Positions 9,663 to 34,257 of a DNA stretch of 64,000 bases are shown piece by piece. The stretch is from Hyaloraphidium curvatum SAG 235-1 (Eukaryota > Fungi > Monoblepharomycota): contig JAIVFI010000006.1 of the NCBI GenBank assembly GCA_025558095.1, positions 186,001 through 250,000 on the forward strand, written 5' to 3'. Below the pieces are notes generated by a model. It did no database searches and was not told the DNA's origin. It worked only from the letters and a program-made list of their open reading frames with translations. Made by a program: the position numbers and the translations under genes. The number at the start of each line of letters is the position of its first letter. Within the stretch, counting starts at the first letter, position 1.

Positions 9663-10562
9663 CTATATGTCGAACAGGAGCTCTTTGGCTGTCCTCCAGC
9701 AGACCCATTCGGTATCCTCGTCGCTCAAGAAACCGAAGCCCCGCCGAGCAAAGTCCGCAGACACCTTGTAGCCGTCGCCTCCGAGGCCCGAACCGCCGCC
9801 GATTTGGCCCGTGATCTGGAACGGAGCGTCGCTCTCCCACATGCACCTGTTCGCACCGAACGCCTCGATCACACGACGGAGCATTGGAACGAGGTCCTCG
9901 TAAGTCGGATCGCTGCCTTTCGAATAAAATGCTCCGAGCTTGACGTAGATGTTCCTGTGGACGGCCAGAGCGCAGAGCGCGTCCAGCTCCGCCCCCGACG
10001 CCTCGCCGTCCTTGACACGGATCCGCGCCACATGGTCGATGATCACCCGCGTGTTCGGGAACTCGCGGCACATCCTGTCGATCTCGGGTAGCCCATTCGG
10101 GTCCACCAGGCAGGCCATCGCCTTGCCCGTCCGCGCCGCGGTCGCAAACATGGTCCGGTAGCCCGGCCGGTCGAGCCATCCTTGGGCGGGGGCGACGAAC
10201 TCCTCCGCGGGGCCGGACCACCGCTCGAGCCCGGGGTAGATGCGGAAGGAGGTGATGCCTTTGCTCTTCAGAGCCGCCATCCGTTCCGCCACGTCCGATT
10301 CGGCAAAGTGCACGACGGCCGTCCCCACGAACATGTCCGGGTGCGCGGCGATGGCGTCGGTGATGTACGAGTTATCTTGGCCGTAGTGGATCATCTGGAT
10401 CAGGTTGACGCGCGAGACGCCCGCCCTGCGGCACTGCTCCAGGAGTTGGTCCACGGTGAAAGAGTCGGGCTGCACCGCGCCTTTCCACTCCGGGAGCACG
10501 GGGTACGACTCCTCGTCCGGGGTCCAGACGTGCGAATGCGCGTCGATGAGCTCCTGAACCAT
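9663..10562 (-). CDS. Amidohydrolase_2 family metallohydrolase (sugar-lactonase-like), intronless
   Basis: IDAHSHVW (HxH), IIDHVARI, VKLGAFY, FGANRCMWESDAPF. Confidence 0.85.
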   Translation of the reverse strand: MVQELIDAHSHVWTPDEESYPVLPEWKGAVQPDSFTVDQLLEQCRRAGVSRVNLIQMIHYGQDNSYITDAIAAHPDMFVGTAVVHFAESDVAERMAALKSKGITSFRIYPGLERWSGPAEEFVAPAQGWLDRPGYRTMFATAARTGKAMACLVDPNGLPEIDRMCREFPNTRVIIDHVARIRVKDGEASGAELDALCALAVHRNIYVKLGAFYSKGSDPTYEDLVPMLRRVIEAFGANRCMWESDAPFQITGQIGGGSGLGGDGYKVSADFARRGFGFLSDEDTEWVCWRTAKELLFDI

Positions 10563-21859: not shown

Positions 21860-21863
21860 GCTT

Positions 21864-22339
21864 TGCGAAGGTACAGGACGTCTGACATTCGGACAAGGGT
21901 ATTTTCATTTTCGGTTCGGAGGCGTGGAGGCGTCGGTCCTCGCGATCGACTCGTGATCGACTCGCGATCGACTCGCGAGTGACTCGCGAGTCACTCGCGA
22001 GCGACTCGCGAGCGACTCGCAAGTGACTCGGCACAGCCACCCTCCTGGGATATATAAAGAGCGGGACATGTAACAGTACAATCTTGATCGCCAGTTGACT
22101 CTACGTGCTCTCCGTGTCGTTCGACCACCGTGCGGAACCCCGCCCGGCCGGATCCTCGTTCTGAGAGCCCTTGGGACGCACCCCGGGAGACATCCCGTAA
22201 CCTCTTTCCCCCGGCTACAGTCAAGTATCTTCAGCGCTGTTCGCTTATTCATATTCAGGGCCTATCCGACCCGAAGAGCCGAGCGGGATTCGCGCGCCGG
22301 GTTAGAGCTTCAGGCCCGGTTCCGACCCGGACCGTCGCA
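21864..22339 (+). repeat. 5' LTR (476 bp)
   Basis: Begins TGCGAAGGTAC and ends GGACCGTCGCA (imperfect terminal inverted repeat). No difference from the 3' LTR seen by eye; identical ORFs in the track at offset 10179. Confidence 0.97.
21939..22058 (+). promoter_or_regulatory. LTR U3 enhancer: ~8.5 x 11-bp CTCGCGA(G/T)NNA units followed by TATATAAA (22051-22058)
   Basis: ctcgcgatcga ctcgtgatcga ctcgcgatcga ctcgcgagtga ctcgcgagtca ctcgcgagcga ctcgcgagcga ctcgcaagtga ctcg; the TATA box lies ~20 bp downstream. Confidence 0.8.
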
Positions 22340-22340
22340 C

Positions 22341-22351
22341 TGGTCCGACCT
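22341..22351 (+). other. Primer-binding site TGGTCCGACCT (candidate tRNA-Tyr primer)
   Basis: Starts 1 nt after the LTR with TGG (complement of CCA). It is complementary to ...AGGTCGGA-CCA, the 3' end of CCGACCT-acceptor-stem tRNA-Tyr as known from plants. Confidence 0.65.
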
Positions 22352-22506
22352 CCGTGATCCTGCTCTCGGGTCTTCGACACCTCGTTCGACTTCAGTTTCG
22401 ACTTCGATAATCCAAAAACAACTTCGCCTGGCACCGGCGCTTGTCGACTGCCACTCTTTTCTGTCAACCGTATTCCGTCAACCAAGTTCATTCCCCTTCG
22501 CCAAAC

Positions 22507-24162
22507 ATGGACCCCGTTCAAGAAGCCGCCCCTCAGCAGGAGGTTCAGCAGCCTCAGGAAGCTAACGATTTGCAGAACAACCCGCAGGCCCAGGCGATTA
22601 TCCAAGCTGCGCAGGCCGCGATCCAGCAAGTCGGCGCCGCCGCCAACGACGTCGCCCAACTCGCCGCCCAGCAAGCCGCCCAGCAAGCCGTCGCCGATCA
22701 GCTTGCCGCTCAGCTCGTGGCGCAACAGACCGCTCAGCAGTTGCCAGCTGCCCAAGTTCAACAGCAAGCCGCCGCCGAGCAGCTTGCAGCGCAGCAGCTC
22801 CAGCAGCTCGCCGCACAGCAGCAGGGTCAGCGGAGCGAGCAAGCCCCGGCTGTCAACGCTGCCGCCGCTGGTCTCCAGCCGCAGCAGTTCGTCGACGCCG
22901 TACGGGCCATCGTTGGCGCTCAGCCGCCGAACGATGGAAGCACCGGCCTCCCCCAGGCGGATCGCCAGGGCGGAGCCGCCAAGCTCCCGGCTCAGCTGCT
23001 GCCTGCTTCTGTTCAGCCCTTCGATCCCGCTACGCAGGACCCGGAAGACTTCTTCCGCGACCTCACTACGGTTCTCACGGCGTTCGGCTCCATCAACAAC
23101 CTCGTCAAGGTCTTCCCGGTCTTCCTTGGGCCTCTGCCGCGCGCAATGTGGCACAACATCACGCCGCAGAACCGCCCTCCGGACTATCCCGCGACGGCCA
23201 CCTATCCTCCGGTGACCCAGAACGATGTGCTTGCCTGGCTACGCTACCACTTCGAGCCCCGCGACGCATCGATGCATTATCGCCGGCACTACAACACGAT
23301 TCAGATGACCAACGATGAGACCCTCGACGCCTTCGTTGCCCGCGTATCCCTGGCCGAGACGCGTTTCCTCTCGCACTGCGGCGATCAGCTTCCTACCAGG
23401 GAAGTGCAAGACAGCGTGTACGGCCAGAACCTGCTCTACGGACTGCGCCCGGAGCTACGCGGGAAGGCGCTGGAGCTCCTCGGGGATCACCTCATCAACC
23501 GCACTTCCGTCACCAAGGTCATCGAGAAGATGCGCACCGTCATGCAAGCATCGGGCCCTGCGCAGCCGCGCGACATCCGTTTCCTGGGCCAGAACTCGAT
23601 TTCGGAGATTCCGGCTCTGGTCGGCCAGCACTCGTCTTCGGGCTCCTCCAAGGCGACCGACAAGGCGACGACGGAAGTGCTGCTGGCTCATACGCAGGCT
23701 CTCACAAAGCTGCTGGAGCCTAAGGGAGAGCGCAGGCCCACCGGTGGACCGCCGGGGGAGTCTGCGTTCCGGCCTCCGCGCCGTTTCGTCCCCTTCCAGT
23801 CTCGTCGGAGCCAGCCGTTGCCGCCTTCGGGGCCGAACAGCGACCTCGTCGAGATCAAGGAGCTCATCACCAAGCTGCTGCCGTCGCCTCGCCATCAGGT
23901 TCAGGCCGCGGAGACCAGGTCGAACCCCCCCGCGAGGCCTCCTCCGATCGATCGGCCCCGCCAGCAGCAGGAGCGCCAGGATCGCCGGCCCTTCACCTCG
24001 GAGTACCGCGACCAGAAGCGCTTCCAGCCTCGCCACTGCCATCTCTGTGGCATGGATGGGCATGCTCAGGACGAGTGCTGGGAGTTGGAGAAGAATGCCA
24101 ACCGCCGCCCACTCAACTGGAAGTCTCGCCTCGGCAACACCCCTTCGATGCCAAAAAACTAG
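22507..24162 (+). CDS. gag: Gag (Q/A-rich N-terminus, capsid, CCHC nucleocapsid knuckle)
   Basis: ATG at 22507 (MDPVQEAAPQQ); capsid-like IQMTNDETLDAFVARV...LLYGLRPEL; knuckle CHLCGMDGHAQDEC. Confidence 0.9.
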   Translation: MDPVQEAAPQQEVQQPQEANDLQNNPQAQAIIQAAQAAIQQVGAAANDVAQLAAQQAAQQAVADQLAAQLVAQQTAQQLPAAQVQQQAAAEQLAAQQLQQLAAQQQGQRSEQAPAVNAAAAGLQPQQFVDAVRAIVGAQPPNDGSTGLPQADRQGGAAKLPAQLLPASVQPFDPATQDPEDFFRDLTTVLTAFGSINNLVKVFPVFLGPLPRAMWHNITPQNRPPDYPATATYPPVTQNDVLAWLRYHFEPRDASMHYRRHYNTIQMTNDETLDAFVARVSLAETRFLSHCGDQLPTREVQDSVYGQNLLYGLRPELRGKALELLGDHLINRTSVTKVIEKMRTVMQASGPAQPRDIRFLGQNSISEIPALVGQHSSSGSSKATDKATTEVLLAHTQALTKLLEPKGERRPTGGPPGESAFRPPRRFVPFQSRRSQPLPPSGPNSDLVEIKELITKLLPSPRHQVQAAETRSNPPARPPPIDRPRQQQERQDRRPFTSEYRDQKRFQPRHCHLCGMDGHAQDECWELEKNANRRPLNWKSRLGNTPSMPKN

Positions 24163-24200
24163 CTTTGCCCTCAGTGCCGCACGGCCATAGGGGGGCAGAG
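24153..24200 (+). other. -1 programmed ribosomal frameshift signal (A AAA AAC plus downstream stem-loop)
   Basis: Gag ends CCA AAA AAC TAG and pol is in the -1 frame. CTTTGCCCTC (24163-24172) can pair with GGGGGCAGAG (24191-24200) using two G-U pairs. Confidence 0.85.
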
Positions 24201-27200
24201 ATCCAAGCTCTTGAACCACATGTGGAACCTCTTCCTGGAACTTCCCCGCTGCCGGACGGCACGGACCCTTCATCTCCTGGCGGATCGCCGGAGTTGTCGG
24301 ATTCCGCGACCGATGAACCGACGGCGGAGGACCACGTTCATCATTGGCCCTTCGGGGGCACGGAGTACATCCTCTTCCTCGAGGCGGAGGCAGCTCGACA
24401 GGCCGCCGTTCGTCAGCAGCGGGAGGCGCTCATGCCGATCGACGAGACCCTGGCCCCGCCGCCGGCAGCGGATTCGGCGTCGCCCGGCTCGGTCGAGGTC
24501 GTGGGAAACGGTGAACCGGCGGCACAGGATGCGGACGCGGGATCAGCGGATGCACCTATGCACGAGGGCCCGACCGTCCGCGCCGTTCCCGGACCTTTCG
24601 AAAGGCCCCCTCCTCCTTCCGCCTACGCACGACCACCGCTGCCTGGCCCTCGGCCTCGCCCGCGGCCACCTGCTCCGGTCGCCCCTCCGCCGGATCGCTG
24701 GACGTGGACTTCGCAAGTGCAGTTCCACTATCAGGCGGCACGCGTTTCGGCATGGGTCAACGGCGTGAATACCCCCGCGGCCCTCGTCGACTCCGGTGCC
24801 TCAGTGGTGGCGGTTCGGTCGTCCTTCTTCTGCCGGATCCACCCGTCGCCACCGATCAAACCATGGACACTCGGCACCCTCAGCACGGCCGCGGCCGGCG
24901 GAACCATGTGGGTCCGCGGAGTTGCTAAGATGGACATCCTGGTCGGGAATCAACACTGCGTCATGGACGTCGCCATCATGGACGGTCTCATGGACGACGT
25001 GATCCTCGGCACCCCTTGGCTCTCCGCCCTACGCGTTCAGATGGACTGGGAGACGCCGGTCCTCTATTTCAAGGACGATCCGGAGGGGGTCGTCGTGCCA
25101 ATGCACATTGTTGCGCGACCGCTCTTCGGATCACACCTGGTCGCCCCGCTCCATTCAACCACCTCCATCACGGTCTACCCCAACGAGGACGTCTCGATCA
25201 CCGCTGAGCTGGCCCCGACGACTCCCTTGGCGACCGTCGTGGAGATGGACTTGACAGGGGTCATCGAGACGCCGAACACTTCGCCGTTCGATCGCCTCTT
25301 CATCATCCCGTCGGCGACGCCCGACAGAGACGGTCGGCTGCCGATTCTCATCCGCAACTACGGGACGACACCGGTCACGATCGGCCCGGGCACCCACCTC
25401 GGCCGCTTCCGCGTGCGGATTCCTGGATTTCTCGCTCCGGAACCGCCCACGTATCTGGCTCCCGCGCAGATCTCGATGCTGGAGCCCGAGCTGCCCCACA
25501 CCGAACCGGCCGAATCCACGCTCACGGTCGAGGAGACCATCGATCTGTTCGCGGTGCCCTCGCCGGGATCGATTGGACCACCTCAGCCTCCCGGCGTGGA
25601 GCCTCCTCCGGTCGAGGCTATCGAGCTCAAGATGGACCAAACGATCCTGAGCGAGGGGGACAAACCTCGTTTCCATAAGCTCTGCGACCGCTACCGGGAC
25701 GTGTTTGGTCCTTGGATCGGCAAGCTGCGCAACCATCGCTTCCGGATCGACACGGGCGACCTCAAGCCGATCCACCAGATGCCGTACCGGACCCCGTTCC
25801 GGCTTCGCGGGGAAATGGACAAGATCATCGACGACCTGCTCGTGCAGGGCGTAGTCGTCCCCTCGCGAAGCCCCTGGGCCACGCCCTGCATCATGGTGCC
25901 AAAAGGGCACGGCTCGGGCGAATGGCGCCTGGTGATCGATTACCGGAAGCTCAACGCCGCCACCAAGCGCGACGTCTACCCGATGAAGAACCCAAGCGAC
26001 ACTCTCGCTCTCCTCAGCGCGGCCAAGGTGTGGAGCGTTTGCGACATCCGCTCCGGCTTTTGGCACGTGGAGGTGGCCGACGAGGACAAGGAAAAGACGG
26101 CCTTCACGACGCACCGCGGTCTCTACCAGTGGGAGCGGATGGCCATGGGCTTTACCAACGCTCCTGCAACCTTTGCTCGGATCATGGACGAGCTCCTCGC
26201 CGGCCTCCAGTGGTACTGCTTGGTGGTCTTCATCGACGACATCATTATCTTCTCGCAGACGGTCGACGAGCACCTCGTGCACCTGGAGCTCCTCTTTGAC
26301 CGACTGCGCGAGGCCGGGATGACTCTGAAGCTGGCCAAATGCAAGTTCTTCCGCCGCGAGGTCAAATACCTCGGGCATTACGTCACCGCCGACGGCCTCA
26401 AGGTCGACCCCGAGAAGACCCGCGCGGTGGACCAGTTCCCCCGCCCAACGACCAAGAAGGAGCTCCAATCGTTTCTCGGCCTCTCCAACTACTATCGCCC
26501 CTTCATTGCCGGCTACGCCAACATTGCCAGCCCGCTCACCCGCCTGACGCAGGACGGCGTCTCGGTCTCTCGGGCCTGGGACGACGCATGCGAGGCCGCC
26601 TTCCGTATGCTAAAGGAACGGCTTACGTCGGCGCCCGTGCTCCGTCGCCCCGACTTTTCCAAGCGCTTCGTCTTGTTCACGGATGCCAGCGATATCGGCC
26701 TCGGCGCGGTGCTCAGCCAGCGGGACTCCGATGGCAAGGAGTACGTCATCGCCTACGCCAGCCGCGCTCTGCAGCCGAACGAGCGCAAGTGGGACACTCG
26801 GGAGCGCGAAGCCCTGGCCGTTGTTTGGGCATGCGAGCATTTCCGGGCGTATTTGATCGGGGACGAGTTTGAGGTGGTCACCGACCATAGCGCCCTCAAA
26901 TGGCTCTTGGAGACCTCCAAGCCGGGCCGCCTACAGCGCTGGATCCTCCGGCTCTCGGACTTCAGGTTCCAGATCATCCATCGCTCGGGCAAAGCGAACT
27001 CCAACGCCGACTTCCTGTCTCGTCAGCTCGTGGCGCCGTCGCCCGACGAGGACGTGCCTATGGGCGACCCCGAGGAAATCTTGGACATCCCTGCCTTTTG
27101 GCCCCCAAACCCTCCCGACCCCTTGCCTTTTTCTTCTTTTTCTGGGGGGGGACGGGCGCCCGGATTCCTCTCCGGGAGTGATCTCGGTCAGACTTCCCGT

Positions 27201-29210
27201 TCTTCGTCAACCCCAGTCACCGAGTCAGACTCGGGACGAGCTACTGCGGGTTCCTCAGTCAATTGTGAATCAATGGAGCGAGTGCTGTCTGGCACGGAGT
27301 TCCCGGCCACGGTTGCCGCAGTGGAGGGAACCCTGTGGAGCGATCCGGGGACCCTGCCCGAGGCTGCGGCACCGGAGACGCAGATCCTCCTGCCGATCCC
27401 AACGACGAACGCACAGGTCGACCCGGCAGACGTGCCTGAGCGAGACCTGGCGTTCCTTCATCCGGCACTGCTTGAGGTGCTACCCGATGTCGGGGGCATC
27501 AGTGCTATTGACCTTGCCGACGTCAGATCCCGGGATGCCCTGCGCAAAGTGCAAGAAGCCGACGTCGAGACCAGCGCGCTGATCCGCTTCGTGCGAGACG
27601 GGGAGCTCCCTCCCAACGTGAATCTGGCCAAATTCTGCAAGAAGTACGGCGAGCAGTACTTCCTCGCTACGGACGGCGTGCTCTGCCGGCGCGATGTACT
27701 CGCGACTGGTACCCGTCGTATCCCGGTCACCCAGCTCGTGATACCGCACGAGCTGAGGGAGGCCTACCTGCAACGTGCGCACGACGATCCCCTGAGCGGG
27801 CACGTCGGGCGACACCGGGCGTACAGCAATCTGCGGCGCCGCGTATATTGGGTCGGCATGGCGCACGACGTTCGCCGCTGGACGCGAGCCTGCCTTACAT
27901 GCATGACCCGGAAGATGCCTTCGGTATCGAACCAGGGCTTACTGAAATCGGTTCCTCTCACAGGTCCCAACGAGGACATCTACATCGACTACATCGGCGA
28001 GATCAATCCGGCCACGCCCCGCGGCAACAAGTACCTTCTCGTCGTCTACGATCCGTTCACTAAATGGGTCGCGGCGTATCCGACTCCGGACCTCTCTGGG
28101 CCGACGACGGCGAAGCTGCTCTATACGCGATGGATTCTCGAGCACGGTCTTCCGAAGCGGATTCACCACGACAACGCCTCGAACCTGGACAACCATTACA
28201 TGGAGTACCTGCTCAAGCTACTCGGCATCAACCGGGGCCTGGTCACGGTTGGGCATCCCAGGGCTTCCCTCGCGGAGCGCCCGAACCGGTGGATCATCGA
28301 CGCCCTGAGCGCAGCGGTCTCCAAGAACTACCAGACATGGGACGAGGACATCGTGGGGGTCATCTTTGCCTTCCGGACCTCCATCCACGCGACGACCGGC
28401 GAAACTCCGTTCTTTCTGATGCATGGTCGGGATGCTCGTATTCCGCTCGACCTACTTTACGACGAGACCGAGATTCGCGAGCCAGTGCACCTGCGGGCCA
28501 GCGACGAGGAGGACAAGAAGACAGAGGATGAGCGCCGGCGGACCTACGTCGTGGAGCTCGTGGCGCAGCTTCGTGCGGCCTACGACCTGGTGGCCGAGAA
28601 GATGGCCGCAGCGGCGGAGACTCGGAACGCCAAGGCCAACGCTACCCGGCTTCCGATTACCTTCCGCCCCGGCGACCTCGTGCTCATCTGGGGACCAGAA
28701 CGACCGCGCAAGGGCGAGCCGGGCAAGTTCGTCTCTCGTTATCTTGGGCCCTACCGCATCGAGGAGTCAGGCCACACCGAGCTCACCTGGAAGTGTAGAC
28801 ACGTCTACGAGACCGACCACGTCACCACTGTGCATGTGGACCGGCTGGCGCGCTACAAGCCTTGGGAGTCGGCCACCTTCAACGCGCGCTCGTGGAACGC
28901 ACGCGCCCCGGAGCTCGCCGCCGGTGAAGAGCTCGATCTCTCGGAACCGGTGAACGAGTTCGAAGAGGAAATCGAGGTCGAGAACGCGCTTGGGAACGAG
29001 CAGGAGTACACCGTCGAGGACATCGTCGGCCACGAGGGCCAGGGTCACGGACTCAAGTTCGAGGTCAAGTGGCGGGGCTTCGCTCGCACGACCAAGCTCC
29101 CTCTGGACATGTTGCACGGCGCCATAGGGATCGTCCGCGCCTATGCCGATCGCGTTGGTCTCCAGCTCCCGACGGGTCTCCCCAGGCGCATGCGGACTCG
29201 GCGTCGCTAG
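24153..29210 (+). CDS. pol: Pol polyprotein: protease, dUTPase-like remnant, reverse transcriptase, RNase H, integrase, chromodomain
   Basis: ALVDSGAS (PR); WRLVIDYRKLN, DIRSGFWHV, FIDDIIIFS (RT); TDASDIGLGAVL, EREALAV, TDHSAL, NADFLSR (RH); HDDPLSGH...CLTC, IDYIG, HDNASN, AERPNR, LGPYRI (IN); EYTVEDIV...FEVKWRGF (chromo). No internal stops. Confidence 0.97.
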   Translation, partial: KKLALPSVPHGHRGAEIQALEPHVEPLPGTSPLPDGTDPSSPGGSPELSDSATDEPTAEDHVHHWPFGGTEYILFLEAEAARQAAVRQQREALMPIDETLAPPPAADSASPGSVEVVGNGEPAAQDADAGSADAPMHEGPTVRAVPGPFERPPPPSAYARPPLPGPRPRPRPPAPVAPPPDRWTWTSQVQFHYQAARVSAWVNGVNTPAALVDSGASVVAVRSSFFCRIHPSPPIKPWTLGTLSTAAAGGTMWVRGVAKMDILVGNQHCVMDVAIMDGLMDDVILGTPWLSALRVQMDWETPVLYFKDDPEGVVVPMHIVARPLFGSHLVAPLHSTTSITVYPNEDVSITAELAPTTPLATVVEMDLTGVIETPNTSPFDRLFIIPSATPDRDGRLPILIRNYGTTPVTIGPGTHLGRFRVRIPGFLAPEPPTYLAPAQISMLEPELPHTEPAESTLTVEETIDLFAVPSPGSIGPPQPPGVEPPPVEAIELKMDQTILSEGDKPRFHKLCDRYRDVFGPWIGKLRNHRFRIDTGDLKPIHQMPYRTPFRLRGEMDKIIDDLLVQGVVVPSRSPWATPCIMVPKGHGSGEWRLVIDYRKLNAATKRDVYPMKNPSDTLALLSAAKVWSVCDIRSGFWHVEVADEDKEKTAFTTHRGLYQWERMAMGFTNAPATFARIMDELLAGLQWYCLVVFIDDIIIFSQTVDEHLVHLELLFDRLREAGMTLKLAKCKFFRREVKYLGHYVTADGLKVDPEKTRAVDQFPRPTTKKELQSFLGLSNYYRPFIAGYANIASPLTRLTQDGVSVSRAWDDACEAAFRMLKERLTSAPVLRRPDFSKRFVLFTDASDIGLGAVLSQRDSDGKEYVIAYASRALQPNERKWDTREREALAVVWACEHFRAYLIGDEFEVVTDHSALKWLLETSKPGRLQRWILRLSDFRFQIIHRSGKANSNADFLSRQLVAPSPDEDVPMGDPEEILDIPAFWPPNPPDPLPFSSFSGGGRAPGFLSGSDLGQTSRSSSTPVTESDSGRATAGSSVNCESMERVLSGTEFPATVAAVEGTLWSDPGTLPEAAAPETQILLPIPTTNAQVDPADVPERDLAFLHPALLEVLPDVGGISAIDLADVRSRDALRKVQEADVETSALIRFVRDGELPPNVNLAKFCKKYGEQYFLATDGVLCRRDVLATGTRRIPVTQLVIPHELREAYLQRAHDDPLSGHVGRHRAYSNLRRRVYWVGMAHDVRRWTRACLTCMTRKMPSVSNQGLLKSVPLTGPNEDIYIDYIGEINPATPRGNKYLLVVYDPFTKWVAAYPTPDLSGPTTAKLLYTRWILEHGLPKRIHHDNASNLDNHYMEYLLKLLGINRGLVTVGHPRASLAERPNRWIIDALSAAVSKNYQTWDEDIVGVIFAFRTSIHATTGETPFFLMHGRDARIPLDLLYDETEIREPVHLRASDEEDKKTEDERRRTYVVELVAQLRAAYDLVAEKMAAAAETRNAKANATRLPITFRPGDLVLIWGPERPRKGEPGKFVSRYLGPYRIEESGHTELTWKCRHVYETDHVTTVHVDRLARYKPWESATFNARSWNARAPELAAGEELDLSEPVNEFEEEIEVENALGNEQEYTVEDIVGHEGQGHGLKFEVKWRGFARTTKLPLDMLHGAIGIVRAYADRVGLQLPTGLPRRMRTRRR
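27131..27156 (+). other. Candidate central polypurine tract (T-rich box + G8)
   Basis: TTCTTCTTTTTCTGGGGGGGGACGGG resembles the 3' PPT context CTTCTTTTGGGTGGGGGCG and lies ~45 bp from the element midpoint (27191). Confidence 0.55.
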
Positions 29211-29280
29211 TAACACCAACGACGTCTATCCGGTCACAGCACTACCATCTCTGTGCTCCGATCCCCGGCTTTTCACTGAC

Positions 29281-30266
29281 TCAAACCCGACGTACTACCT
29301 CGAGCCTATCCTCGACCCCCTCGAACGCCAACTTGTGATACCCGGACTGAAAATGCGTGTTCAGATTGCCCAGGAGGCCCTTAGCCTTGTGCTTTACCAG
29401 ATGGCACCACGGGAACGAGCATACCGCCACTTCGCCCTTGGTGGGGCTCCGGTACAGTTCGCCGGCGTACGTTCCGGCAATCTTCCATCGGAGGAAGGAG
29501 CCTGCCGGCACGGCATCAGGGACCTTCTTCGTCACCCGTTCCGCCTTCAAGCCCCAGACCGGCGACGACTTCTTCATCTGGCACATTCAGTGACGATCAG
29601 CGCTTGTGGGGCGTACTCCCGTCGAGCCGTTCACCTGCGCAATCTGCTCCCGGGCCTCCCCGCGCTGCACCACATGCCCCTCGTCTTTACCTGAAGTTGC
29701 CGTTTGGGCCGTCTGGAAGGCGCTCCCTTGTTCAGTGGCGGCCTCGAAGTCGCCTAAGTGGTCCAGCTCCCAAGAGGGCGCATGAAGCGTGACTGACAGC
29801 ACGGGGACTTCGTCGGCCGCCTCGAGCTCCTCCCTCGAGTCCGCCGCCGACTCGCCCTCGCCGACGGAAGGCGCACCCTTCGACGACATCGCCGGCAGGA
29901 AGACGCCGGAGGTCCGGGTTGCGGCCGCGGCCGCGATCGGGTCGTTGCCTCTGGCCCCGCCAGCCTCGCGCAGCTTGGCGGTCCCGCCGGCCTCGCGCAG
30001 CTCGGCGACGAGCCGACGGAGCACTCGGACCTCGACAACGACGTTCCCAGCCTCTTCGGCCAGCGGCAACATCCCGCGCATGGCGGCCAGACGCACCAGT
30101 TGCAGGAAGCAGTCGACCACGTCGTCCTCCTGGCGCGGCGCTGAGCTCCCGTTCGAGGACCACGCCGCTACGCTCTTACCTTGGTGCACAGCAGGACGTC
30201 GAAGGTCGGCAACCGAACCTCGAACCACGAACTCGGCGGGACGACGTTCGGCAGCTCCGCACTCAT
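29281..30266 (-). CDS. Antisense accessory gene of the retrotransposon, spliced (exons 30266-30180, 30129-29635, 29577-29281; ~292 aa), C-terminal BED-like zinc finger
   Basis: Two phase-0 introns of host-typical size (50 nt GTAAGA...CCAG; 57 nt GTGAAC...CTGAT...CCAG, containing the in-frame stop) give one continuous frame. It ends KKSSPVW...VAVCSFPWC...LGNLNTHFQSGYH. Confidence 0.7.
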
Positions 30267-30406
30267 GACAGGCGCGGAGATCCCCCCAGCTCTTCTGGAC
30301 CCTACGTCGCGATCCCCCGCGAGCGCTTTCGTCGACGCAATGGCGTACGGCCCTCGCTCGCGCCCCGTCCCCCGTGGCGGGGACTGGTGACCCGGTGTGC
30401 GGGCGA

Positions 30407-30566
30407 ACTCGCGGTCGACTCGACTCGCAGTTGACTCGCGGTTGACTCGCGGTTGGCTCGCGGTTGACTCGCAAGTGACTCGCGAGTCACTCGCGAGTCG
30501 CTCGCAAGTCACTCGCGAGCGACTTGCGATGCACTCGCGAGTTGCCTGCGCTTCGCACCATATAAG
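30407..30566. promoter_or_regulatory. Internal (probably bidirectional) promoter: ~12 x 11-bp ACTCGCG(A/G)(G/T)TN array + TATAA (30561-30565)
   Basis: Same unit and similar array-to-TATA spacing (~18-20 bp) as the LTR U3. It lies between the divergent ATGs at 30266 (-) and 30635 (+). Confidence 0.75.
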
Positions 30567-30634
30567 CGGCGGACCATAGGAGGCCGCGGCCGCGGACTAC
30601 GCACCCAACGTCGACCTCGCCGCTACCGTCTCCC

Positions 30635-31900
30635 ATGGCGACCCCCACGACTGCCGGCCACAACCTGCGGCCCCGCCGGCCGCATGTGGCCACGGCGCCG
30701 CCGCCGGCGACTGCGCCCGTCGCTGCGTTGCCTGGCGTCGTACCCCCGGACTATCGGTCGGCGCTTGCCTCCCTCTCGACCCGGCTGGACGACCTCCGGG
30801 CCGACCTCGACGTCAGACACTCCCAGACGACGGCCCACTTGCACAAGGTCGAGCAGGCCGCCTTCTCCGCGGTCATGCCCATCCGCGCAGCCCTCGACGC
30901 ACTCCACCCGGTGCTCAACACCCTCGTCAATGTCGGCAACCTGGAGCAGCACGCTCTTGACCGCGTAACGGCGACGCTCGAGCAGCAAGAGGCCCGCCTG
31001 GACGCCCAGATCCGCCAGCAGCGTGACGAGCTCCAGGTGGTCCTCAGTGGCCGCCACCGCGAACTTGAGTTCGCCGTCACCGCCTTGCGCCGGACCGACG
31101 ACGCTCGTCTCGGTGCCATCGAGACGCAGCTCGACCGGCTTGCGTTGGTGCTCGAGGCTCAACGTCAGAACTTCAACGGCATTCTCCTGGTGGACGAAGC
31201 TACCATCGAGGAGTTGAGGGAGTTCGGCTCTTCCCTCGCCGGGCTGGTTGCTCAGACCGGGACCAACCTCGAAACCACCATCGAGACCGTCGTCGAGACC
31301 AATCTCGCCCGTCACAACAATGGCCCCATGGCGGAGTTTGCGGCCGACCTCAAGAGCGTCCTGGCGGCCCATCTGCAGCGATTTGGGTCGGAGCAGCACA
31401 AGCAGCTCATGCTTTCAGCTCAAGACGACACCACGCTCCTCACGGCCGGCCTGAACGCGCAGCGCGAGCACTTCACCAAGACCGCCGACGAGCAACGGGC
31501 CCTCCTGCGTCGCTTCCTCGGCAATCAAGTGGCTCCCCTGGCGGGGCAAACGACGCCCGCCGTGGTCACCTCCACGCCGGTCGGCCGCGTCAAGGACGAG
31601 GACCTCGTCACCTCCGACGATGAGGCTGGGGATATGCAACCTCCAGCTCCTCGCCCCGAGAGCGTGTCCAGCAGCGACGCCTCCTCCATCGTCTCGCAGG
31701 ACGACGGCCTCTTGGCCGCCCTGTACGACGACATCCCGGCCGCTCCCTACAAGTCGACCATGCCCCCGGTCTACACCCCCTCGGCCGCGGACGGCTCAGC
31801 CGTGCATGCCGCCTTCGCTCTCGGCTTTACCCGCCGGCTCCGCGCCCCGCCGCCGAGCGACGACGAGGCGGACGCCGACGTCGACTTTGAGGACGCCTAA
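30635..31900 (+). CDS. ORF3 of the retrotransposon: 421-aa soluble coiled-coil protein with acidic tail, unknown function
   Basis: Uninterrupted ORF with GC3-rich codons, ATG 70 bp after TATA, long heptad helices, no signal peptide or TM segment. Confidence 0.8.
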   Translation: MATPTTAGHNLRPRRPHVATAPPPATAPVAALPGVVPPDYRSALASLSTRLDDLRADLDVRHSQTTAHLHKVEQAAFSAVMPIRAALDALHPVLNTLVNVGNLEQHALDRVTATLEQQEARLDAQIRQQRDELQVVLSGRHRELEFAVTALRRTDDARLGAIETQLDRLALVLEAQRQNFNGILLVDEATIEELREFGSSLAGLVAQTGTNLETTIETVVETNLARHNNGPMAEFAADLKSVLAAHLQRFGSEQHKQLMLSAQDDTTLLTAGLNAQREHFTKTADEQRALLRRFLGNQVAPLAGQTTPAVVTSTPVGRVKDEDLVTSDDEAGDMQPPAPRPESVSSSDASSIVSQDDGLLAALYDDIPAAPYKSTMPPVYTPSAADGSAVHAAFALGFTRRLRAPPPSDDEADADVDFEDA

Positions 31901-32030
31901 GCCACCCTTCGGCCCTACACTCTCCAACATCTGTTGTCTCCACCTCGGCCTTCAACATCTTCTACTGCAAGCATGACGTCACTCCGCGGAGGATCTTCGA
32001 TTTCGTGGCGCCGAGGGCGGCGCCTTCTTT

Positions 32031-32042
32031 TGGGTGGGGGCG
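32031..32042 (+). other. 3' polypurine tract
   Basis: TTTTGGGTGGGGG-CG immediately before the 3' LTR TG. Confidence 0.8.
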
Positions 32043-32518
32043 TGCGAAGGTACAGGACGTCTGACATTCGGACAAGGGTATTTTCATTTTCGGTTCGGAG
32101 GCGTGGAGGCGTCGGTCCTCGCGATCGACTCGTGATCGACTCGCGATCGACTCGCGAGTGACTCGCGAGTCACTCGCGAGCGACTCGCGAGCGACTCGCA
32201 AGTGACTCGGCACAGCCACCCTCCTGGGATATATAAAGAGCGGGACATGTAACAGTACAATCTTGATCGCCAGTTGACTCTACGTGCTCTCCGTGTCGTT
32301 CGACCACCGTGCGGAACCCCGCCCGGCCGGATCCTCGTTCTGAGAGCCCTTGGGACGCACCCCGGGAGACATCCCGTAACCTCTTTCCCCCGGCTACAGT
32401 CAAGTATCTTCAGCGCTGTTCGCTTATTCATATTCAGGGCCTATCCGACCCGAAGAGCCGAGCGGGATTCGCGCGCCGGGTTAGAGCTTCAGGCCCGGTT
32501 CCGACCCGGACCGTCGCA
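32043..32518 (+). repeat. 3' LTR (476 bp)
   Basis: Direct repeat of 21864-22339, followed by the TSD GCTT. Confidence 0.97.
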
Positions 32519-34257
32519 GCTTGTCCTGCGAGCGTGCTCGATGTTATGTTGAGTTTGCTCCAAACGCGCTCCAGGACCTTCGAATCATGCAGCCTCAATG
32601 ATTCAAACAGTACGTCCCCATCAGCACCGGTTTCCCGGGCCCGCAGCAGCAGCTCCTTGAAAGCCGAGAAGTCCGCGTTGAACCTCTTGTCAAGCTGTTC
32701 CTCTTGGATCTGGTTCTTCGCCTTTGGAACAAGCACAACCAGCTTTTCGAGCAATCTGATCTGCGCTTCGGAAGCGGCATCAATGAATGTCCGATGCTTC
32801 TCCCGTCTGGAAGCCGAAGCACTCCTCAATGCCTTCCCACAGGCGTCAATCTCAAGCAGGAGTGCCAGGCACTTCTCCACAGGTTTAAGAAGCTTGTTCT
32901 CAGCGATTCCAACGGCGCGAAGCTTTATGTACCATAGATAAAGGTCTCGCAATGCGCTCTCCTCCCACTGCTGACGAGGACATACACGCTGCCCATCAAA
33001 ACGCCAGCTCAAAAGCCAGCTTCGCCAATCCTCTAGCGCAGGAAACGGCTCCTTTGCGCGAGCACCGCCTGTGGGGTCATGAAGACGCACAGGAGAGTTC
33101 ACTTTGGCAACTAAACCCCCTGCAGCACCCAGTCGAAAAAGGAAGTCGATGTCCTCGGCACACGTTAGGCCAGGAATGAAGTCCTTGCCACGTGTTAGTC
33201 CCGGACGCAGCAGAAACGCCTTGTAGACGTTGCTTGGCACCTTACGATTGCCTATCCATTCATGACCGGCTGGATGGTTGAAAGCAACTGGCGTCGTGCC
33301 CGGAGCCTTTTGCGATGTCTTGCAGAATCCGATCACAGCAGGCCGTACTCTGACGTTCGTCTCCCGCAGCCGGGCTGCGGCCTCGTCTGCAGTGGCCACC
33401 GCCTGTGCAACAGCATCCACAGCTGAGACCGGTTTCGCAAGCTTCTGCCAGGCACTTCCAGCGAGCTTCAAACCCTTCGACTCGTCCTTGTCGGGAATTC
33501 GGGAGAATGTGCAGTTGTCGTCCAGCATCCAATACTCTCTAGAAATTGTTGAGCACTGGGGTCGCTCGCATCTGAAGCACACCTACTTGAGCAGAACACC
33601 CCTTGGCCCGGAAGGAAGAATACCGTTCACCATGGCCCGGTGCAGTACGAACCGAGCATAGGCAATGCCGCGTCCATCGTGAGGTAGAACAGCGAAGGTC
33701 AAGTTGGGATACGCAGCCGCGTATTCGGCGTATTGAAGAGGCTCGACGACGACCACAGCGATCTGGTCCCGTGCAGTGACTCTAGCGTCCTTGCTGAGCT
33801 CCCGGAGCAAGGGCGCTTGATCGCTCCCAGCACGGCCCGCGCTCGGCACAAAAATTGGGATCCGCTCTGGACTCCTACGAGATCTTATCAAATCGAGAAG
33901 TTCCGCTGCTGCAGCGCCTTTGAATTCAACGATTTCAACCACGGCTTCATGAAGAGCATATGGAAGATTGGATATCGCGACATGGAACACGTCCTGATGT
34001 ACTGTGACCGGGAGTGGCGTGGGTGACAGGGCACCGGAACGCGCTGGATGTTCGCGGGGCTTGCTCGTGGAGTAGTAGCGCTGTTGAAGCGTCGTAGTGG
34101 TGCTGACCATCGAGCGCGTGCGACGCGCCACCGGCTGTTCGGGAGTGGGAGGCCGTGGCGTTTCGGCAGCGGGCACTCTAAGGCCACCGTCCGCGGCCAC
34201 GCCCGGGGGCGCCGCTGCGGCACGCTGGACATCAGACTTCTTCGGCTTCGGAGGCAT
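32519..34257 (-). pseudogene. 5' part of a GREB1-like / TET-JBP-associated (J-base glucosyltransferase-like) glycosyltransferase gene, interrupted by the retrotransposon; intron 33539-33586
   Basis: IPIFVPSAGRA, VVVVEPLQYAEYAAAYP..AVLPHDGRGIAYARF, EYWMLDDN, CAEDIDFLFRL follow the GT-A motif order of this family. A 48-nt GTAGGT...TCTAG intron joins ORFs 33583 and 32434 in frame. Confidence 0.7.

Follow-up and report, generated by a model that had tools for sequence, protein, structure and literature searches.

The locus described here raises the question of whether a retrotransposon can carry a hidden, spliced gene on the strand opposite to its own coding strand and, if so, what the product of that gene does. 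The DNA analysed (the window, at its full length) is a 64-kb stretch of contig JAIVFI010000006.1 from Hyaloraphidium curvatum SAG 235-1, a member of the early-diverging fungal phylum Monoblepharomycota. Parts of it match contigs of the H. curvatum assembly GCA_025558095.1 at 99.6-100% identity. The window has a GC content of about 64% and contains ordinary host genes, including a Zn2Cys6/Fungal_trans gene, and a 10.66-kb Ty3/gypsy chromovirus, here called element A. An earlier note had proposed that a hidden, spliced antisense gene between pol and the 3' long terminal repeat (LTR) of element A encodes a protein with a BED-like zinc finger that binds tandem arrays of 11-bp units. The gene was borne out by its coding-type GC, by a homologue in a sister element (element B, at locus L001) and by intron positions that the two share. 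Judged from these sequence comparisons, a conserved, spliced, protein-coding antisense accessory gene is very probably real.

The gene occupies 29281-30266 on the minus strand and has three exons. Exon 1 (30180..30266, 87 nt) consists of the ATG and 28 codons and is followed by a 50-nt intron 1 (30130..30179, GTAAGA..CCAG, phase 0), retention of which would cause a frameshift and a stop. Exon 2 (29635..30129, 495 nt) has 165 codons. Intron 2 (29578..29634, 57 nt, GTGAAC..CCAG, phase 0) contains a CTGAT branch-like motif and an in-frame TGA, and exon 3 (29281..29577, 297 nt) supplies 98 codons and the stop. The spliced product therefore has 29 + 165 + 98 = 292 residues. This is the two-intron, three-exon minus-strand model of about 292 aa that had been put forward earlier, and all of its coordinates and phases were exact when checked on the sequence. 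The product had also been said to end with KKSSPVW .. VAVCSFPWCHLVKHKAKGLLGNLNTHFQSGYH. These residues are present, but they are not the true end, since 17 more residues follow (KLAFEGVEDRLEVVRRV), and these hold the block best conserved with the homologue. There is an imperfect 27-nt tandem duplication inside exon 2 (29956-30007, LREAGGTAK / LREAGGARG) that is not found in the homologue.

Open reading frames (ORFs) of 100-300 codons are common on every strand of DNA with 64% GC, and thus ORFs alone prove nothing here. However, GC at codon positions 1/2/3 was coding-like in all three exons (0.55/0.45/0.90 in exon 1, 0.77/0.50/0.82 in exon 2 and 0.59/0.44/0.77 in exon 3), matching host genes and the gag, pol and ORF3 of the element. 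Protein searches and models were run exon by exon. A HMMER search in which the exon-3 ORF was compared with every one of 1.84 billion representative proteins yielded a single true relative, P0001 (E 3.8e-11; pairwise E 2e-19), a 274-aa hypothetical protein of H. curvatum. A second match, to a repetitive bacterial surface protein, was taken as spurious. The P0001 gene is spliced and antisense as well, and it lies directly 3' of pol in element B (L001 10001-10966). While gag-pol of elements A and B is 89-96% identical at the DNA level up to the pol stop, blastn gave no alignment from the pol stop through the end of ORF3 (window 29211-31668), nor in the 5' part of U3 in the LTR. The remaining LTR is about 77-84% identical. 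This mosaic divergence suggests that the 3' block has been exchanged by recombination or is evolving very fast.

In exon-wise global alignments of the element A gene with its L001 homologue, scored against 500 shuffles, none of the shuffles scored as high as exon 2 (z = 7.0) or exon 3 (z = 16), while exon 1 showed no similarity (z = -0.3; 307/500 shuffles reached its score). Exons 2 and 3 are collinear with those of the homologue, and the conserved chain seen in tblastx was restricted to the strand and frames of the antisense gene. The idea that these are chance ORFs of GC-rich DNA with no gene behind them draws on the abundance of such ORFs; it is extremely improbable, and effectively refuted, given protein conservation of this strength where the DNA cannot be aligned, a signal specific to one frame and strand, and a coding-like GC3. 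Further searches added no sequences. The 295-aa ORF around exon 2 had no relative in a homology search, and P0001 retrieved P0001 alone. Exact look-ups of the 101-aa exon-3 ORF and the ORF3 product of the window found none on record, and no protein from the window copy was encountered in the exhaustive exon-3 search. Metagenome scans (with an alignment of the domain and with the pol C-terminus) and a viral-contig scan gave no relatives.

Intron 2 is at the identical protein position in the two elements, between GEAREQIAQ and MKKSS.. in A and between GEAQHQIAS and MPSDA.. in B. Intron 1 also has a common position if element B uses the proximal AG (L001 10123, after CTGAC). The database model of P0001 uses a distal acceptor, giving a 90-nt intron 1 (L001 10070-10159) that omits 12 codons, GDAVDAFLGLLQ. 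The omitted GDAVDAFLGLLQ aligns with the start of exon 2 in element A, EDDVVDCFLQLV, and the proximal AG gives an intron of 54 nt. All four introns of A and B are 50-57 nt long, run from GT to AG and contain in-frame stops. Introns of like size are implied by other gene models at H. curvatum loci (a 200-aa model over 657 nt implies 54 nt). Both intron positions thus recur in the diverged element B, as expected if splice sites are conserved between copies. Although its sequence is not conserved, exon 1 cannot be dispensed with, because no in-frame ATG precedes the conserved start of exon 2.

We also considered whether the region is left unspliced and encodes separate small proteins (an exon-2 ORF and a zinc-motif protein of 98-101 aa), or is a pseudogene broken by a stop. 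An ATG opens exon 3 in both elements (window 29575-29577; L001 10604-10606), the lengths of both copies of intron 2 are multiples of 3 (57 and 51 nt), and the frame in element A is broken by a single TGA, all of which would suit this explanation. However, the GT..AG ends, the CTGAT/CTGAC branch-like motifs and the stops are at the same protein positions despite DNA too diverged for alignment, and the conservation of the flanking codons does not extend into the translated introns. In addition, the conserved exon 2 start, DxVDxFLxL, would lack an upstream in-frame ATG unless exon 1 is spliced on. An unspliced locus is therefore very unlikely. Given the shared ATG of exon 3, independent translation of the zinc-motif domain, from unspliced or internally initiated RNA, is conceivable too. 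A DNA alignment of the flanks of the antisense genes in A and B found nothing convincingly conserved except two short blocks, AGGGTCCA and GGGGGATCTC, which lie 5' of the antisense ATG in both elements (window 30277-30303, minus strand; L001 about 9925-9975). These blocks are candidates for a promoter or initiator element of that gene.

The antisense product starts with a short N-terminus, continues with an acidic, probably disordered middle and finishes in a basic domain of about 90 aa at the C-terminus. The exon 2 product is acidic (pI, isoelectric point, 4.6 in A and 4.4 in B), and its conserved islands are DxVDxFLxL, VxVLxxxxLRRxVxELR, SVGE and GEAxxQIA. The exon 3 product is basic (pI 9.9 in A and 9.4 in B) and is 42-44% identical to the C-terminus of P0001, with 41/98 positions invariant between A and B. 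Among these are the four ligands of a putative zinc-binding Cys-Cys-His-His (CCHH) motif, C53, C58, H75 and H81 of exon 3 (29335..29421, minus strand), which are spaced C-x4-C-x16-H-x5-H in A and C-x4-C-x18-H-x5-H in B. An invariant block, HKxAFEGV, lies C-terminal to the motif, and W8, W31 and Y42 are conserved, with W8 and W31 located 44 and 21 residues before C53. AlphaFold2 models built on a two-sequence alignment were of low confidence, with a predicted local distance difference test (pLDDT) score of 43 for exon 3 of A and 59 for the P0001 domain. At that low confidence, both models have four beta strands followed by a helix bearing the first His, with the Cys pair in the beta region and the His pair in or after the helix. 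We consider the C-terminal domain rather likely to be a zinc-binding CCHH module.

To which class of zinc finger this domain belongs is a separate matter, and the BED-like label given to it earlier was not supported. With exon 3, exon 2, the 101-aa ORF and P0001 as queries, hmmscan found no zf-BED and no other Pfam family at E<=10. The C-x2-C of zf-BED is absent, and both homologues have C-x4-C in its place (CSFPWC in A, CPFHWC in B), the spacing that the earlier note had called atypical. Of the S-x-V-W signature that had been invoked, the W alone is kept in the homologue. The H-x3-5-[HC] of zf-BED is present (HFQSGYH in A, HLKSGEH in B), with the helix taken from the low-confidence models. 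When the two models were compared with the Protein Data Bank (PDB) by Foldseek, a check that the earlier note had proposed for the last 98 aa, the best matches (E 0.76 and 0.44) included no zinc-finger family. Three PDB sequence searches found no significant relative; the top lead, which was not significant, was the C-x4-C classical finger of KLF5 (E 1.1). A beta-trefoil match in the same kind of search (E 0.29) was discarded as noise.

Some features do recall BED fingers (PF02892). In its H-x5-H and in the N(L/M)NxH that precedes the first His, the domain is similar to the C-terminal half of BED. The distance from Cys to His is long and differs between the homologues (16 or 18), whereas it is fixed at 12 in classical C2H2 fingers (PF00096), and some units of the element B arrays contain GTCGCGAC, a piece of the published hDREF site to which the earlier note refers. 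A true but very divergent BED finger is nevertheless unlikely, because no zf-BED match, no C-x2-C, no conserved S-x-V-W and no fold match were found, W8 sits far upstream of the first Cys, and the sole sequence lead is a classical finger. Nor does the domain match a classical C2H2 finger. Its Cys pair and its His pair are spaced as expected, but 16 (A) or 18 (B) residues separate them where 12 would be needed, and no match to a hidden Markov model (HMM) was obtained. It shares with both families a CCHH pattern with H-x5-H and, at low confidence, a beta-then-helix order, and with SP/KLF-type C2H2 fingers a C-x4-C with an aromatic residue at C+2, which is a weak lead. It differs from both in its HMM result and in some 45 conserved residues before the first Cys, for which two extra beta strands are predicted. 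The fair description is an orphan, basic, C2H2-like CCHH domain, which should not be filed as BED.

The arrays that this protein had been proposed to bind are found just upstream of a TATA box in both U3 and the internal promoter, in element A as well as in element B, and their units are spaced at about one helical turn. In element A, the U3 array (21937..22030, plus strand; about 8.5 units of 11 bp) is followed 20 bp downstream by a TATA box, TATATAAAG (22051-22059), and the copies of array and TATA box in the 3' LTR are at 32116-32209 and 32230-32238. The internal array (30407..30542, plus strand; about 12 units of 11 bp) lies between the antisense gene and ORF3 and is followed by a TATA-like box, CATATAAGC (30559-30567, plus strand). 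ORF3 has an array-plus-TATA promoter of its own. The constant core of the 11-bp unit is ACTCGCG, and 24 of the 25 ACTCGCG sites of element A fall in its three arrays, while none occurs in the element B arrays. Only 4 of the 8 units in the LTR and 4 of the approximately 12 internal ones contain the palindrome CTCGCGAG; 12 of its 15 sites in the window are within element A. The other three are in 53 kb of host DNA, where it is not enriched (about 4.5 sites would be expected by chance over the whole window). The arrays of element B are built on another unit, ACGGCGTCG; 8 of the 9 ACGGCGTCG sites of element B fall in its two arrays, and none is found in the A arrays. Each lineage therefore uses one motif of its own at both promoters and also has its own versions of the two accessory proteins. 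A regulator encoded by the element and acting on sites of its own would be expected to leave such a pattern, and the basic CCHH protein appears to be a better candidate for the array-binder than ORF3.

Overall, the best explanation that we can offer is that the accessory antisense gene encodes an array-binding regulator of its own element, a reading that we hold tentatively and with a little less than even confidence. According to this reading, the internal array would be a shared upstream element for the divergent antisense gene and the TATA-driven ORF3, and the antisense protein would be a zinc-dependent DNA-binding regulator recognising the element-specific 11-bp units. With units upstream of both the LTR and the internal TATA boxes, a self-contained regulatory loop, activating or repressing, would result, comparable by analogy to a retroviral transactivator or antisense regulator. 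As the gene is antisense to the genomic RNA, its introns cannot be spliced out of that RNA and are passed on to each copy. The earlier note had stated that introns can persist in a retroelement only in this orientation. The orientation does explain obligatory retention, but the exclusivity is overstated, as sense-strand introns persist in retroelements such as retroviruses (env) and plant Ogre, where unspliced RNA gets packaged. Taken separately, the step in which the antisense protein binds the arrays is possible but doubtful, and the same doubt applies to a history in which an element-encoded sequence-specific factor and its arrays in the LTR and in a bidirectional internal promoter diverged together between the lineages, whose gag-pol is still about 92-96% identical. 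Each lineage would then have a private circuit, and the factor would be the counterpart, in a retrotransposon, of the transactivators of complex retroviruses.

Alternatively, the gene might be real but its product not an array-binder: it could be an RNA-binding protein or chaperone, a silencing suppressor, a targeting or assembly factor, or a copy-number inhibitor, and host factors or ORF3 would bind the arrays. We consider this conceivable but less likely than not. No DNA-binding family or fold could be assigned to the domain, ORF3 too differs between the elements, and CG-rich palindromic boxes are common as host promoter elements. The array, U3 and accessory genes are also inherited as a block, and a joint difference is then expected anyway. 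However, the basic nature of the domain and its conserved CCHH motif speak against this alternative, as does the presence of one private motif in both promoters of each element. Since the A and B motifs are mutually exclusive, two different host factors would be needed, and the lack of enrichment of CTCGCGAG in host DNA also argues against host factors and for a regulator encoded by the element. Several points count against such a regulator. Splicing rests on conservation plus one database gene model, there are two homologues only, exon 1 has no sequence conservation, and conservation appears in just two element lineages. No family, structure or fold match was obtained for any zinc-finger class, with models of too low a quality for a verdict. 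The accessory genes, internal array and U3 form one continuous stretch of the genomic RNA, and a single template switch where pol ends would exchange all of it. The joint A/B difference therefore needs no functional link, and the covariation of arrays and accessory genes, though compatible with array binding, proves nothing. The array-binder could also be ORF3, which is likewise different in A and B, or host factors. Lastly, tandem copies of element A from which exon 3 and most of exon 2 have been deleted persist (see below), and thus those copies do not depend on the gene in cis for their persistence.

The region between pol and the 3' LTR of plant Ty3/gypsy elements is well known for additional antisense ORFs, which are widespread in plants and whose function is unknown (PMC7264820, PMC11963269). 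In Retand, they code for a TRP28 domain with a putative DNA-binding role and are found together with internal tandem arrays (PMC7264820, PMC11963269). The Hyaloraphidium gene has the features by which an aORF-3R is defined (PMC7264820): it is an antisense coding ORF, it lies between pol and the 3' LTR, it is conserved in related elements (two lineages) and it has no host paralogues. It is similar to the plant aORF-3R of Retand/Tat not only in position, orientation and the lack of host paralogues but also in a proposed DNA-binding or regulatory role and in the association with family-specific tandem repeats (PMC7264820, PMC11963269). In contrast, the element here is a chromovirus of an early-diverging fungus, while Retand belongs to a non-chromovirus lineage (PMC11963269). 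The Hyaloraphidium protein is also unrelated to the plant ones, with no match to TRP28 or any other Pfam family, and its gene has two conserved introns and is accompanied by promoter-proximal 11-bp arrays in U3 and in the internal promoter. What is new compared with the known antisense ORFs is thus the unrelated protein, the conserved introns, the arrays in two promoters and the early-diverging fungal host.

Among fungi, Botrytis cinerea has a comparable case in brtn, described as an antisense gene of its Boty-like Ty3/gypsy elements (Zhao et al. 2011, cited in PMC8365987). Going by that description only, the two cases are alike in being fungal Ty3/gypsy elements with an extra antisense gene (PMC8365987). 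They are unlike in that H. curvatum is a monoblepharid, far from Botrytis, and the exhaustive search of the protein library met no relative beyond H. curvatum. Foamy viruses have an internal promoter for accessory genes, and their DNA-binding transactivator Tas acts on both the LTR and the internal promoter. HBZ of human T-cell leukemia virus type 1 (HTLV-1) is a spliced antisense regulator (PMC10186651; mentioned also in PMC11963269). HBZ, a nuclear regulator, and Tas have no sequence or domain relationship to the antisense protein, and the likeness is an analogy in the way they work, with a proposed regulator role for the Hyaloraphidium protein. Furthermore, HBZ starts in the 3' LTR, whereas the Hyaloraphidium gene would start at the internal array. 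The present case is compact and young, with near-same gag-pol but different accessory proteins and arrays, so that a clean A/B swap comparison is possible. Binding of the protein to its own arrays, if true, would show that private transcription factors are not confined to complex retroviruses but occur in simple retrotransposons too, and one more orphan zinc-binding DNA-recognition domain would be added to those known. The locus is also an instance of how repeat masking hides real spliced genes.

Element A is a young, apparently autonomous Ty3/gypsy chromovirus. Its assignment to this group is based on TG..CA LTRs with a target-site duplication, a gag CCHC knuckle, the order protease, reverse transcriptase, RNase H and integrase, and a C-terminal chromodomain. 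The 5' LTR (21864..22339) and the 3' LTR (32043..32518), both on the plus strand, are 476 bp each and 100% identical, and they are flanked by the 4-bp duplication GCTT (21860-21863 and 32519-32522). A putative primer-binding site (TGGTCCGACC..., 22341..22359, plus strand) begins 1 base past the LTR and was recognised by its position and TGG start; no transfer RNA gene within the 64-kb window matched it as the primer. The gag ORF (22507..24162, plus strand) encodes 551 aa with a CCHC knuckle, CHLCGMDGHAQDEC. The pol ORF (24075..29210, plus strand) has 1711 codons in the -1 frame relative to gag and encodes protease, reverse transcriptase, RNase H, integrase (H2C2 and core) and a C-terminal chromodomain, for which the match was weak (E 0.022, short of the Pfam cut-off) yet at the expected position. 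An A AAA AAC slippery heptamer (24153-24159, plus strand) directly precedes the gag stop. Together with the -1 frame of pol, it makes -1 ribosomal frameshifting the probable route to Gag-pol. A presumed polypurine-like tract, GGGTGGGGGCG (32032..32042, plus strand), adjoins the 3' LTR.

ORF3 of element A (30635..31900, plus strand) encodes a 421-aa helical, coiled-coil-like protein with an acidic C-terminus and a PPxY motif. It is 30% identical to that of element B (L001 8378-9640, minus strand), and the two share an N-terminal LRPRRxHVA and a C-terminal TSTPVxRVxDEDLVxSDD .. PYKST..PPxYTP, which includes the PPxY. ORF3 has no Pfam family and, by eye, no transmembrane segment, and it corresponds to annotated hypothetical proteins of H. 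curvatum (P0003-P0005). In element B (L001 7991-17751), the antisense gene is likewise followed by its own array, a TATA box and the ORF3 homologue P0003. This element is defective: only the final 168 bp of its 5' LTR remain, its pol is broken into two ORFs, and a frameshift is probable near the end of its ORF3, while the antisense gene is intact. In the public annotation of L001, the two accessory genes were called and gag and pol were not.

Further copies of element A (L002 and L003-L005) were retrieved via ORF3, but none of them provided an independent antisense gene. L002, at the end of JAIVFI010000045.1, contains only part of exon 3, identical to the window. It is rearranged or mis-assembled, with window 29534-27563 inverted and joined to 30884-32526, followed by another copy, and the 411-aa annotated model P0004, which spans this junction, is probably chimeric. 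L003, L004 and L005 (JAIVFI010000011.1) are part of at least three tandem element A units that are 11,079 bp apart and share one deletion, of window 28030-30046. Lost with it are the C-terminal part of the integrase, the chromodomain and, from the antisense gene, exon 3 and most of exon 2. The tandem units also have an LTR variant (94.6% identical) that is split by about 1.16 kb of unexplained sequence with a 200-aa minus-strand gene. In the window, element A is inserted in a minus-strand host ORF of 373 codons (to 33582), about 20 codons before its end. This ORF has no Pfam family and is restored when the flanks of element A are joined.

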